Shown here: in pieces, positions 50,464-57,830 of the stretch
Position numbering within the stretch: the stretch's first letter is position 1
Layout: each line of letters starts with the position of its first letter
Sequence record: NC_004629.1
Strand: one strand, 5' to 3'
DNA: 64,000 nucleotides
Notes under the pieces: model-generated
Told to the model about the DNA's origin: nothing
The model's database searches: none
The model's input: the letters and a program-made list of their open reading frames with translations, nothing else
Program-made: the position numbers and the translations under genes

Positions 50464-50474
50464 GTAATCTTCTA

Positions 50475-50497
50475 CATATAGTGTATATGAAAGTATT
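50475..50497 (-). promoter_or_regulatory. bipartite promoter for tRNA-Thr
   Basis: TAATAC-N14-TATG; G at 50475, 12 nt before the tRNA. Confidence 0.65.
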
Positions 50498-52197: not shown

Positions 52198-52375
52198 ACT
52201 TGGTACCCCAGTTTATCGTTTTGTCGAGAAGAGCTTGACTAGGTCGTTTATTACGAATCTGATTCTTAATAGACTCATTTAGCTCTTCCATCGTTTTCCG
52301 AACTTTAACTAATCGTTCCTTTTGTTCATTTGTAGGAACACTACTAACTATATCTTGCAATGCTTTAAGTGACAT
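52190..52375 (-). CDS. hypothetical protein
   Basis: GGGT RBS. Confidence 0.65.
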   Translation of the reverse strand: MSLKALQDIVSSVPTNEQKERLVKVRKTMEELNESIKNQIRNKRPSQALLDKTINWGTKYG

Positions 52376-52506
52376 GTCTTTACCCTATTTGTATTTAGCT
52401 ATAAGATTCAACTACTGGGTACTTTTACAAGACGACATAAAGGCAGCATTAGCTGCCTTTATAGTTTACATAGTAGTGAAATATAACTAAATCTAAAACT
52501 ATGAAT

Positions 52507-52547
52507 TGGCTCCGTGACCTGGGTTAGAACCAGGGACCCAGTGATTA
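52507..52547 (-). pseudogene. 3' half of disrupted tRNA-Asn(GTT)
   Basis: TAATCACTGGGTCCCTGGTTCTAACCCAGGTCACGGAGCCA: 38/41 identical to the 3' part of tRNA-Asn 55407..55482. Confidence 0.9.
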
Positions 52548-52581
52548 TGTTTTTGTATATTAATCTACATCGAGTATATTT

Positions 52582-53140
52582 TTATTGTGTGGGGGCCAAG
52601 GTGCTAATACCCCCATTAGTGCTGACCCTAATAAACCTAGCTGGAATATTGATTTTGTATGACCGACACCATTTACGAATTGCATTATCCGATACCCCAT
52701 ACTTTTCTCCTATTTTCACAAGAGATAACAATGTAACGTCAAGGACGAATTGTTCTTTAGATGGTCGATCAACCTTACGTCGACCTTTGGCAGAACACTC
52801 AGGGTTACAGAATTTAATCAATTTATGATTCATTACCCTACCACAAGCACCACAAAGTTTTGTAGGATAGTTCTTTGGATCAATGCCCAGTCGTTTCATC
52901 CATGCATGTAGTTTTAGATGCTGTGATTGAGGGAGGATCAAAAGATTATCGGGATGGTTATTGAGTTTGTTCTCATCCAAATGATGAACCTCTTCGTCAT
53001 CGTAAAGAGGTCTTCCGATTGTATCTTCACCGACTACACGGTGTTCGTATACCCATCCAAACATTTTGGGGTTAGCTTTTGCCTGCCGATGTTCAGGTAA
53101 ATACAGAGCCCGATAACCATTAATTATTTTTTTCTTTCAT
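52582..53140 (-). CDS. HNH homing endonuclease (HNH + CxxC Zn finger + HTH); natural start frameshifted in an A7 run
   Basis: YEHRVV.E..IGRPL...EEVHHLDENKLNNHPDNL; CGACG, CNPEC; ATG 53140 joins the frame only if A7 (53127-53133) were A6; otherwise in-frame ATG is 53064. Confidence 0.85.
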
Positions 53141-53223
53141 ATCGAACCTAGGGTTTAAAAAATAGATAGCTAGTTCGATCTATAGAACAAGATAAAAGTA
53201 GCCAGCTGGCTACTTTTAGAAAT

Positions 53224-53310
53224 TGGCTGGTAAGGTAGGATTCGAACCTACGGTGGGCTTTCGCCAACGGATTAACAGTCCGCTCCCTGCTGCCACTCGG
53301 GTACTTACCA
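53224..53310 (-). tRNA. tRNA-Asn(GTT) with long variable arm (type II body)
   Basis: TGGTAAG/CTTACCA acceptor, G73, CCA; GCGGA-CTGTTAA-TCCGT; 15-nt variable region with GGC-GAAA-GCC hairpin; GTAGG-TTCGAAT-CCTAC. Confidence 0.85.
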
Positions 53311-53319
53311 ATGAAATCG

Positions 53320-53356
53320 TAACAGTCATTTGCTCTACCGACTGAGCTATCACGGA
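53320..53356 (-). pseudogene. 5' half of disrupted tRNA-Asn(GTT)
   Basis: TCCGTGATAGCTCAGTCGGTAGAGCAAATGACTGTTA: 36/37 identical to the 5' part of tRNA-Asn 55407..55482. Confidence 0.9.
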
Positions 53357-53421
53357 AGAATTATGGCGATTTTATATTAGAGATGAGTTACTGACAACCT
53401 AATATAGATATGTAATAACTA

Positions 53422-53444
53422 CATATTATTACAATCTGAGTATT
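53422..53444 (-). promoter_or_regulatory. bipartite promoter upstream of the split tRNA-Asn
   Basis: TAATAC-N14-TATG; G 53422, C 53440. Confidence 0.6.
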
Positions 53445-53517
53445 ATTTATTTCTTGTTATGACATTATGTAAATAACGTGTAGTTAATCTTATTAGAAAC
53501 TATCAAAGTTACTAATT

Positions 53518-54030
53518 CTAACTAAAACGAACCACCATTACCTCTGTACCAAAAGTATCTGCAACCCACTGGTTAAATTCTTTATCAGTGATACCGCGTA
53601 GGTTCAGATTAAATGAGGCATTGTCAACAAGAATATATTTTACAGACGATATTAATTCTTCTTTAATATCTTTTTGAATAGATGATTCTTCAGGTTGATG
53701 AATATATTTACGGAGTTGGTGTGTAATTAAACAAGAAACAATATTATCTTTAGCATTCTGGAACTTAGCCAGTACAGCCTGTTTAATTTTATCTTCTACA
53801 AATACAGCTAGACATTCGCCAGGATGACGATTAGCAAACTCAATCAATGCAGTTGTACTACCACATTGCCGACCTACAAATAATCCAACAGTCCTGTATT
53901 CACGAATAACAATATGACCAATAGAATTAGATCGATAATTAACCCAGTTCTCATTCGTTTTTTGAATTAAAGCATCTAGGATATCTTGGTACTTTACAAT
54001 AGTTCTTACAAACGGATTAGAGTTAGTCAT
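53518..54030 (-). CDS. hypothetical protein with degenerate P-loop
   Basis: GRQCGSTT resembles terminase-type GRQxGKT; ILVDNA Walker-B-like; AAGGAG RBS. Confidence 0.7.
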   Translation of the reverse strand: MTNSNPFVRTIVKYQDILDALIQKTNENWVNYRSNSIGHIVIREYRTVGLFVGRQCGSTTALIEFANRHPGECLAVFVEDKIKQAVLAKFQNAKDNIVSCLITHQLRKYIHQPEESSIQKDIKEELISSVKYILVDNASFNLNLRGITDKEFNQWVADTFGTEVMVVRFS

Positions 54031-54261
54031 AATAGACTCCTTTATTACAATGTAGCATAGATTCAGTTTTTTAACTGGAATTAAATGCCGATTTTGAAAA
54101 GGTGATAAAACCTTTTCTCATCTATAAATGAATTTATAATAGTAACAATGAATATAACCAGGGGTGGCAAACCCCTGGCATTTAGACACACTCTATAATA
54201 AGTTCTACCACCGAGTGTGTTTAGTGGATAGATTTAAGAATACTTTATTATAGTACTCTTA

Positions 54262-54284
54262 CATAATATCATCGTGCCAGTATA
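54262..54284 (-). promoter_or_regulatory. bipartite promoter TTATAC-N14-TATG
   Basis: G 54262, C 54280. Confidence 0.5.
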
Positions 54285-54314
54285 ATTATCTAAATAGTTA
54301 TAAATATTATTATT

Positions 54315-55406: not shown

Positions 55407-55482
<76 letters not shown>

Positions 55483-55565: not shown

Positions 55566-55588
55566 AAACGTATGGACATGACTTCCTA

Positions 55589-55611
55589 CATAGTATTACA
55601 TAACCAGTAAT
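55589..55611 (-). promoter_or_regulatory. bipartite promoter for tRNA-Asp/Asn
   Basis: TATTAC-N14-TATG; G 55589, C 55607. Confidence 0.65.
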
Positions 55612-57674: not shown

Positions 57675-57815
57675 TATAAAGCCTCCCCGAAGGGAGGCGA
57701 TATATCGTCATTAATGCCCAGCAAAGAGTTTTACTCTCTGGGAGCCAGTTGGAAGGGGGACTGGCTCCGATCTATTATGACTAATGTAGAAACAAGGGGG
57801 AAGGATTATTTCTAC
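57675..57815 (-). ncRNA. candidate multi-hairpin small RNA with C-rich loops
   Basis: TATG at 57818-57815, perfect stems ATGTAGAAA/TTTCTACAT and GGAGCCAGT/ACTGGCTCC, terminator 57681-57698. Confidence 0.5.
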
Positions 57816-57830
57816 ATAATATTAGATACA

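Follow-up and report, generated by a model that had tools for sequence, protein, structure and literature searches.

What is the 774-bp insert that splits a tRNA gene of phage phiKZ at its anticodon loop, and why does it bring along a second tRNA with the same anticodon? The locus was studied in a 64,000-nucleotide stretch of sequence record NC_004629.1 (the window), whose positions are used throughout; adding 216334 gives the position in the phiKZ record AF399011, with which the region is 100% identical. ARAGORN places seven tRNA genes on the minus strand. At the locus in question a canonical tRNA-Asn gene lies in two halves, separated by a complete tRNA-Asn of another structural class and by the gene of an HNH endonuclease. 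The evidence given below argues that the insert is probably a mobile cut-and-replace cassette built around a free-standing homing endonuclease of the HNH_3 type, from a family that resides in tRNA anticodon loops, and that the class II (type II) tRNA-Asn is its cargo.

Read along the minus strand, the 5' half of the canonical gene is followed by 9 nt, the class II tRNA-Asn, the HNH open reading frame (ORF) and the 3' half, an order that the initial annotation had given correctly to the base. The insert occupies positions 52546-53319 on the minus strand, in the anticodon loop of the canonical gene. When the two halves are rejoined, with the TA that they share counted once, they form a 76-nt molecule that ARAGORN calls tRNA-Asn and that differs at four positions from the intact copy at 55407, just as the initial annotation had stated. 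Chance resemblance is ruled out because 72 of the 76 positions match and the match is broken at one point only. The TA at 52547-52546 repeats tRNA positions 36-37, after which positions 38-76 follow. Since the halves overlap by this TA, the insertion point is 35/36, 36/37 or 37/38, or else the TA is a 2-bp duplication.

The initial annotation had also expected that other Phikzvirus genomes would keep an uninterrupted tRNA-Asn without HNH gene or type II tRNA, and such empty alleles were found in about 20 genomes. In a megablast search with positions 52300-53700 as query, nine phages (10 records: phiKZ, Brmt, 124.01, 2PS, 6B, 9-Ps-8B, 9Ps-7B, 14Ps5-6 and NK1) match over the full 1401 bp with at least 99.5% identity, and about 20 Phikzvirus phages (24 records) have the flanks 627 bp apart, i.e. 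the empty form. In KEN51 the site is an uninterrupted, annotated tRNA-Asn gene. Removal of 52546-53319 from the phiKZ, Brmt, 6B and 124.01 sequences makes them colinear (627 nt) with KEN51, Churi and SL2 with no other insertion or deletion, and the flanks of occupied and empty alleles are 99% identical. The rejoined halves of Brmt equal the KEN51 tRNA-Asn with no difference, and those of phiKZ differ from it only by G28A. This is the sole change in the phiKZ 5' half relative to the empty allele; in 6B and 124.01 an additional A31G is present. The T-loop of the 3' half reads TTCTAAC in phiKZ and Brmt and TTCGAGT in 6B and 124.01, and both versions also occur among the empty alleles. The presence/absence polymorphism is thus precise, as expected of a mobile element. 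An assembly or sequencing artefact, considered for the split and, as a homopolymer error, for the frameshift described below, was excluded: both features are common to independent genomes, and the split to nine phages.

Three T-loop variants, TTCTAAC, TTCGAAC and TTCGAGT (window 52519-52527 and 55419-55427; loci L002, L013 and L014 of our collection), are shuffled between the two tRNA-Asn loci of Phikzvirus, which indicates gene conversion between these paralogs.

The protein encoded in the insert belongs to the HNH_3 family. It scores 38.1 bits against PF13392 in phiKZ, 41.2 in PA1C and 45.0 in Psa21 (cut-off 24.8) and matches phrog_15471 with E = 2.5e-56. The motif EVHHLDENKxNNHPxNL…H is invariant; the protein also has a CxxC…CxxC segment and, at its C-terminus, a conserved GVSDNAIRKWC. 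Intact ORFs of 185-188 amino acids are found in PA1C, BRkr, Psa21 and the IMG/VR contig UViG_3300046542_000291 (L012), and the phiKZ protein is 88% identical to the intact 185-residue protein of PA1C. Between phiKZ and PA1C the ratio of nonsynonymous to synonymous substitution rates (dN/dS) is 0.05 at dS 1.16, showing that the gene was under strong constraint until recently. In phiKZ the HNH frame is +1 relative to the ATG at 53140, and PA1C has AGAAAA where phiKZ has A7. Neither the single protein nor a profile had a match in a sequence search of the PDB, even at E ≤ 10. An AlphaFold model computed from a 3-sequence alignment reached a predicted local distance difference test (pLDDT) score of 47 and was not used.

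The series of leader, type II tRNA-Asn, terminator and HNH gene is shared by four diverged lineages, namely phiKZ, the PA1C group (four phages), Psa21 and UViG_3300046542_000291, the only new cassette-bearing contig contributed by IMG/VR. In all of them it occurs with a broken canonical tRNA-Asn, so that the linkage of HNH gene and type II tRNA to the split, a point on which the initial annotation depended, holds across these lineages; it does not extend to the T2P group of Phikzvirus, where the type II tRNA follows a 5' half without HNH gene. In the PA1C group the cassette has the same order at a syntenic site, with a few loop nucleotides missing from the junctions, and the halves contain a compensatory pair, C5...G68 for the T5...A68 of phiKZ. 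Psa21 retains a diverged 5' half, with a TGGTAAA acceptor like that of the canonical tRNA-Asn in metagenome contig L052, and no 3' half. In the UViG contig no more than a vestige is left.

Relatives of the HNH protein with 30-50% identity were gathered from phage records and IMG/VR, and orphan tRNA halves at their loci were located by a dedicated scan. tRNA genes lie within 1.5 kb of the HNH relative at 66 of the 80 IMG/VR loci, nearly all on the same strand. At L108/L109, L110 and L111/L112 the relative is encoded inside a 751-773-nt intron that immediately follows the anticodon of a tRNA-Met gene (…CTCAT / … G / AATCG…). The group I intron model RF00028 matches L110 with 83.6 bits and L111 with 82.7 bits, and the joined tRNA-Met exons form a valid tRNA. 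L108 gave no RF00028 match in either search but has the same exon boundaries; the introns of L108, L110 and L111 all end in G. In a quick maximum-likelihood tree the cargo-bearing clade (support 99) groups with the intron-borne clade (83 in the Shimodaira-Hasegawa-like approximate likelihood ratio test, SH-aLRT). The tRNA linkage and the intron contexts indicate that this HNH family lives in tRNA anticodon loops, the phiKZ-type cassette having a spare tRNA instead of a ribozyme. The initial annotation had read the locus as a compact selfish cassette, a view that gains support from the empty alleles, the linkage, the association with tRNA clusters and the group I intron outgroup at the same loop position.

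These introns raise the question of whether the phiKZ insert is itself a self-splicing group I intron, the split gene being still functional and the inner tRNA incidental. Close HNH relatives are indeed encoded in group I introns at the same position of tRNA-Met genes, and the rejoined exons make a valid tRNA. However, RF00028 has no match in the phiKZ insert at E ≤ 10, nor in those of PA1C, Psa21 and L012 at E ≤ 5, in the same search that returned 83 bits for L110 and L111. No candidate 3' exon start is preceded by a G (…AAAAACA/TAATCAC); the base is A, T or C instead (…AAAAACATA/ATCAC), with a U available (CTGTT). Only 34 nt follow the ORF, and a complete tRNA and a strong terminator lie within the insert. 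Moreover, the 5' half has acquired stem-breaking changes (G28A, A31G, G34T), and loop nucleotides or the entire 3' half are missing in PA1C, Psa21, L012 and the T2P group. The identification of the insert as a group I intron was therefore rejected, since it has neither an RF00028 core nor the terminal G, and we consider splicing a barely credible account of the locus.

Two of the intron-bearing loci have a further layer. At L110 (1286-2290, contig 3300018050_001860) and L111 (1284-2300, contig 3300042368_001592) the tRNA-Met gene with its intron and HNH gene sits complete between the halves of another tRNA. A covarying helix, CTCTCGT/ACGAGAG in one locus vs TCTCAT/ATGAGA in the other, closes this nested arrangement, which represents either a second insert-and-replace event or a signal for excision at the RNA level. 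At L114 (1403-2068, contig 3300046328_000321) an HNH relative lies between a 5' half GCCGGTT…CTT and a 3' part consisting of T arm and acceptor (…AACCGGCACCA); between these halves neither an inner tRNA nor an intron was detected, and a separate group I intron match of 62 bits lies upstream at 878-1126.

The inner tRNA had been described as structurally unrelated to the gene that it replaces. This description did not survive comparison: the molecule is one of a larger family of class II tRNA-Asn found in phages and shares its acceptor and T arms with some canonical tRNA-Asn. Its sequence reads TGGTAAG…CTGTTAA…CTTACCA-G-CCA, with a 3-bp D stem, a GAAA-capped variable hairpin, the anticodon GTT, U1-A72, G73 and an encoded CCA. 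In a 17-sequence family alignment, compensatory changes were found in 18 of the 23 cloverleaf pairs. These include all three pairs of the variable arm, a 3-bp stem with a GAAA loop (columns 47-56, 48-55 and 49-54, with 6, 3 and 6 compensatory changes). The cargo hence has the base-paired, covarying extra arm that defines class II. The 9 nt in front of it have homologues 5' of the type II tRNA-Asn of PA1C (GATAGTTTTCT), Psa21 (CGATACGTTTTAAAAT) and L052 (TGATAGTTTTAT).

Every member of the family has the anticodon GTT, which does not agree with an identity as Leu, Ser, Tyr (in bacteria) or Sec tRNA. Leu and Tyr tRNAs use A73, and the G73 of the cargo excludes them. A published table supports this discriminator argument against Leu/Tyr identity, and bacterial Asn identity resides in the anticodon and G73 (PMC9976931). 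In P. aeruginosa, Asn-tRNA is formed by an aspartyl-tRNA synthetase of the non-discriminating kind (ND-AspRS) together with GatCAB, which requires U1-A72 (PMC2330236). By its sequence, the cargo has the whole tRNA-Asn identity set (G34 U35 U36, G73, U1-A72) and is presumably charged; its enlarged D loop might affect GatCAB. U1-A72 is present in the members from Pseudomonas phages, and the T5-like member has G1-C72. During phiKZ infection, phage tRNAs are produced and found with ribosomal fractions, the two Asn species not being told apart (PMC8545117).

Type II relatives were found in PA1C-like phages, Psa21, a 310-kb IMG/VR contig, the 93-kb P. fluorescens phage Y1-MI, T5-like coliphages, salmonella phages and many metagenome contigs. 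Among 185,579 species-representative genomes the search pattern led to a real tRNA in just one, so that class II tRNA-Asn is essentially phage-borne. In L052 a canonical tRNA-Asn with nearly identical acceptor and T arms is located 18 nt upstream of the type II copy, and the spacer between them (…TGATAGTTTTAT) is homologous to the short leader within the cassettes. This tandem pair and its spacer indicate that the type II gene arose as a paralog of canonical tRNA-Asn and was remodelled. A remodelled tRNA-Tyr was considered as well and rejected: the tRNA-Tyr of PA1C and of T5-like phages are not especially similar, and the acceptor and T arms match the canonical tRNA-Asn of L052.

Since the family is so widespread, it could be asked whether the unit is kept mainly for the benefit of its tRNA, for example as a molecule resistant to tRNA-targeting nucleases of the host or of competitors, or one better suited to the host's indirect Asn-tRNA pathway, with the HNH gene as the device that spreads or amplifies it and not a pure parasite. 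Class II tRNA-Asn occurs in many phages without an HNH gene nearby, and in just the one species genome mentioned above; at the locus examined, the T2P group has no canonical copy and retains the type II tRNA-Asn alone. SegB, a different homing endonuclease, amplifies phage tRNA genes against a tRNA-cleaving defence (PMC13096335). Nevertheless, the type II tRNA is absent from about 25 Phikzvirus genomes, and its anticodon loop, where such nucleases usually cut, is unchanged. We consider tRNA benefit as the principal reason for the unit rather unlikely, though worth keeping in mind; it complements the homing model rather than excluding it.

Several neighbouring observations concern this tRNA family. 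In Caulobacter phage CcrColossus (L017, 1505-1594) a class II tRNA with anticodon CTT (Lys) and discriminator T shares the GAAA-capped variable arm of the class II tRNA-Asn family and resembles it in the T arm, so that phages have long-armed tRNAs for either half of the AAN codon box. The metagenome contigs L034, L048, L051 and L052 (up to 1.86 Mb) contain repeated arrays of Asn, Thr and Met tRNAs with three or four tRNA-Asn copies, one of which is class II. In Y1-MI (L006, 2420-2500) an orphan T arm and 3' acceptor strand, then a D arm, lie directly 3' of the class II tRNA-Asn and look like debris of earlier rearrangements.

The cassette's junction was also found at a second site. Next to tRNA-Asp, phiKZ has an intact canonical tRNA-Asn (site B, as distinct from the split gene at site A). 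In eight Phikzvirus phages (T2P, U1B, U5, phi9_PA9, OMKO1, fMGyn-Pae01, Churi and HUST_1) the left junction …TTACGATTTCAT-TGGTAAG recurs at site B, without HNH gene and without 3' half; it was read by sequence in T2P and Churi, and for the remaining six phages it is deduced from their BLAST patterns. In these alleles the terminator belonging to site B, a homologue of the cassette's, comes directly after the type II tRNA. Break repair on a cassette template would produce such an allele if annealing of the right end took place at the first stretch of homology. Site A is empty in Churi, the same BLAST pattern is seen in fMGyn-Pae01 and HUST_1, and T2P is without site A. Because site A is empty in Churi, the donor of its type II tRNA must have been another genome. 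The tRNA-Asp/Asn pair of site B is absent from the PA1C lineage, and in PA1C (L003, 4940-5070) the PHIKZ297 homolog upstream of the cassette is reduced to its 3' end.

A more passive origin has also to be weighed, in which a module of tRNA and HNH gene landed here by illegitimate recombination, the nuclease targets another sequence or nothing, and the polymorphism reflects ordinary recombination. The occupied alleles of the phiKZ clade do look like one lineage (99.7% identity, a common single-nucleotide polymorphism (SNP) and a common frameshift), and phage tRNA regions are recombination hot spots with many tRNA fragments, as in Y1-MI. This explanation nonetheless does not account for an insertion without a stray base, the halves overlapping only by the 2 nt TA, at the point of the tRNA that the intron-borne relatives also occupy. 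Moreover, canonical tRNA-Asn alleles of three kinds harbour the same cassette, two paralogous loci are involved, strong purifying selection has preserved its HNH gene, and the HNH family is tied to tRNA genes. We therefore hold a passive arrival to be improbable.

Some observations weigh against a homing cassette, or at least against recent homing. The occupied alleles of the phiKZ clade are 99.7% identical to each other and have a flank SNP in common (52415 G), which makes a single gain followed by recombination possible in place of repeated homing; the flank SNPs are too few to separate the two. The frameshift is common to phiKZ, Brmt, 6B and 124.01, so that phiKZ has no intact HNH gene, and with the start codon out of frame in phiKZ and its eight closest relatives the present-day mobility of its copy is doubtful. 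Type II tRNA-Asn without any HNH gene in Y1-MI, T5-like phages, L019, L020, L022 and many metagenome contigs means that the cargo has an independent existence. The anticodon loop (GACTGTTAATC) is identical in target and cargo, and discrimination by the nuclease would have to depend on the flanking stems; both the cut in the canonical gene and the immunity of the type II gene are inferred here. The replacement at site B could have arisen by ordinary ectopic gene conversion without a nuclease. In favour of homing stands the result that no genome with both an intact HNH gene and a close intact canonical tRNA-Asn was found in the data examined, where for PA1C and Psa21 other canonical copies were sought in loci of 6.6-9 kb and by BLAST ranking, not in whole genomes.

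Features of the split tRNA-Asn locus and of its paralog, in window positions.
Feature	Position	Strand	Sequence, basis or remark
Candidate phage promoter for the split gene and the cassette	53419..53433	-	TGTAATAATATGTAG; recurrent motif
5' half of canonical tRNA-Asn, positions 1-37	53320..53356	-	TCCGTGATAGCTCAGTCGGTAGAGCAAATGACTGTTA; ends CTGTTA
9-nt spacer, native 5' leader of the type II tRNA gene	53311..53319	-	cgatttcat; homologous leaders elsewhere
Class II tRNA-Asn(GTT), 87 nt	53224..53310	-	ARAGORN; Rfam tRNA 53.7 bits
Intrinsic terminator hairpin after the cargo tRNA	53193..53218	-	11-bp stem, then TTTTATCTTGT; terminator scan and fold
Hairpin over the ribosome-binding site, abutting the HNH start codon	53132..53187	-	GAUCGAACUAG pairs with CUAGGUUCGAU
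Original HNH start (53140) and A7 run (53133-53127) with one extra A	53120..53140	-	frame stops at 53120
HNH_3 homing-type endonuclease frame, 184 codons without stop	52582..53136	-	Pfam, PHROG, comparison with PA1C
PHIKZ296 as annotated, 160-amino-acid ORF from an internal ATG	52582-53064	-	
Insert tail between HNH stop and 3' half, 34 nt	52548..52581	-	too short for a group I core; no terminal G
3' half of canonical tRNA-Asn	52507..52547	-	TAATCACTGGGTCCCTGGTTCTAACCCAGGTCACGGAGCCA; starts TAATCAC
Native terminator-like hairpin of the interrupted tRNA gene	52431..52460	-	aaaggcagctaatgctgccttt followed by atgtcgtc; also 3' of the empty allele
Intact paralogous canonical tRNA-Asn, 76 nt, site B beside tRNA-Asp	55407..55482	-	ARAGORN

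The signals around the cassette suggest how it may be expressed. The motif TGTAATA(A/C)TATGTAG stands 63 nt upstream of the 5' half, where it may act as a promoter, and again before the Asp/Asn pair. Six matches were counted where 1.9 were expected, those at 55586-55600 and 57812-57826 included, and the motif is kept before the tRNA-Asn genes of PA1C, Psa21, L012, L022, Phabio and RVTF4. It contains TATG, the phiKZ late-promoter consensus (PMC7598289), and is likely a tRNA promoter with a late TATG element. A variant, CTATATGTAG, precedes tRNA-Thr at about 50470-50480 of the window.

After the cargo tRNA a strong hairpin and U tract is found in all four cassette lineages; that of phiKZ conforms to the hairpin+TTAT terminator type described for this phage (PMC10914365). 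The native hairpin behind the 3' half is of the same type and presumably terminates transcription. A further hairpin lies over the HNH gene's ribosome-binding site or start codon in all four lineages. Its minimum-free-energy fold has z = -3.4 in phiKZ and -4.2 in PA1C, and pairing of the start codon was also seen in Psa21 and L012. Hairpin occlusion is the usual way of keeping phage homing endonuclease genes weakly expressed, and the start hairpin of the cassette may have this regulatory role. Elsewhere in the window, the PHIKZ297/PHIKZ298 intergenic stretch (54031-54314) contains a strong terminator-like hairpin at 54179-54157; Grad-seq placed an abundant non-coding RNA of about 100 nt in this stretch (PMC8545117).

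From these elements the following course of events can be proposed for the cassette. Insertion at or next to position 36/37 would destroy the canonical tRNA-Asn and, with it, the recognition site of the nuclease itself. The cargo, with its long variable arm and its different D arm and anticodon stem, would keep the decoding of AAY codons and presumably remain uncut. The resident tRNA promoter would transcribe the 5' half, the leader and the cargo tRNA, which RNase P and 3' processing would then set free, while the terminator and the start-occluding hairpin would let through only a trickle of HNH protein. In a mixed infection the nuclease would nick or cut the canonical tRNA-Asn of cassette-free relatives, and repair would copy the cassette into the break with the tRNA halves and the flanks as homology arms. 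If the paralogous tRNA-Asn, a potential second target at 55407, were cut and repaired from the cassette, with the right junction falling in the homologous terminator, the product would be the HNH-less allele of 5' half and type II tRNA seen in the T2P/Churi group. In the phiKZ clade the recent +1 frameshift would have crippled the nuclease, in agreement with the intact target paralog that the phiKZ genome still has.

The scheme can be compared with several known systems. Free-standing homing endonucleases in tRNA clusters (SegB) and their statistical link to tRNA genes are established (PMC2330249, PMC13096335). Like SegB, the GIY-YIG enzyme of intronless homing in T4/T6, the phiKZ nuclease is encoded among tRNA genes, co-inherited with its neighbours and polymorphic among relatives. 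It is, however, an HNH_3 enzyme whose gene lies inside the target tRNA gene and leaves it as two halves, whereas SegB is intergenic, and it brings a tRNA of the same anticodon and a different structural class. Group I introns with endonuclease ORFs occur in the anticodon loops of cyanobacterial tRNA-fMet and tRNA-Leu. With the phage tRNA-Met introns (L108 to L112) the cassette shares the HNH family (40-45% identity), the kind of target, the position beside the anticodon and a similar insert size (751-773 nt in the introns); it differs in having no ribozyme or splice signature, so that the tRNA is not restored in RNA and a separate cargo tRNA substitutes for it. In the "fractured genes" of Aeh1, where mobE splits nrdA, an endonuclease ORF likewise divides a conserved gene directly into two pieces. 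The protein pieces reportedly still work together, whereas in phiKZ the tRNA pieces no longer function and the nuclease brings a replacement gene with it. PhiPA3 gp210 is an HNH enzyme that nicks the phiKZ RNA polymerase gene (PMC11620839). The phiKZ protein shares with it and other HNH_3 enzymes of the I-HmuI type the HNH motif and the phage setting, and a role in competition during jumbo-phage coinfection is plausible; unlike the phiKZ protein, gp210 is encoded by an intron in a protein gene, and the phiKZ protein has no sequence match to solved structures. The author of the initial annotation knew of no insert-and-replace architecture of this kind. Our search of the full-text literature likewise returned nothing that described this cassette or class II tRNA-Asn, and no account of an intron-less endonuclease in a tRNA gene accompanied by a tRNA of the same anticodon and the other class.

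Other loci of the HNH family have unusual tRNAs as neighbours. Unusually long tRNAs, from classes that are normally short, are often found at a distance of 15-60 nt from HNH relatives (L100, L101, L116-L135), for instance in Erwinia phage Hallingskeid (L101, 1369-1454) and Salmonella phage 7t3 (L100, 1365-1446). They comprise tRNAs for Gly (86 nt, with a 12-nt extra variable region), Lys (85 nt), Thr (83 nt), Ile (90 nt) and Arg (83 nt), and may represent the cargo principle with other anticodons. One HNH relative adjoins a tRNA-like element of acceptor and T arm. At L107 (1292-2096, contig 3300037721_000031, 266 kb) a relative with 45% identity follows two tandem tRNA-Arg(TCT), and a class II tRNA-Asn with a GAAA-capped extra arm starts 6 nt after the HNH stop codon.

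We offer a generalization only tentatively, as a possibility with somewhat less in its favour than against it. One HNH family would have found two interchangeable solutions to residence in tRNA genes, a group I intron or a spare tRNA with the same anticodon, in a class II shape that escapes recognition by the nuclease. Class II phage tRNAs (Asn; possibly Lys, Gly, Thr, Ile and Arg) would then be the footprints of this arms race, and the nested loci L110 and L111 further products of it.

If the proposed cut-and-replace cassette is real, it would represent a third strategy of homing endonucleases, besides introns and inteins and besides intergenic free-standing genes: a substitute gene immune to the nuclease, which would let an endonuclease occupy a gene of an essential type without cost. 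It also gives a concrete account of where a conserved class II tRNA-Asn, found almost exclusively in phages, may have come from. Among jumbo phages, phiKZ is a leading, therapy-related model, and its relatives recombine in shared phage nuclei; a drive acting on tRNA genes could explain part of the differences in tRNA repertoire between phages that are otherwise 99% identical.

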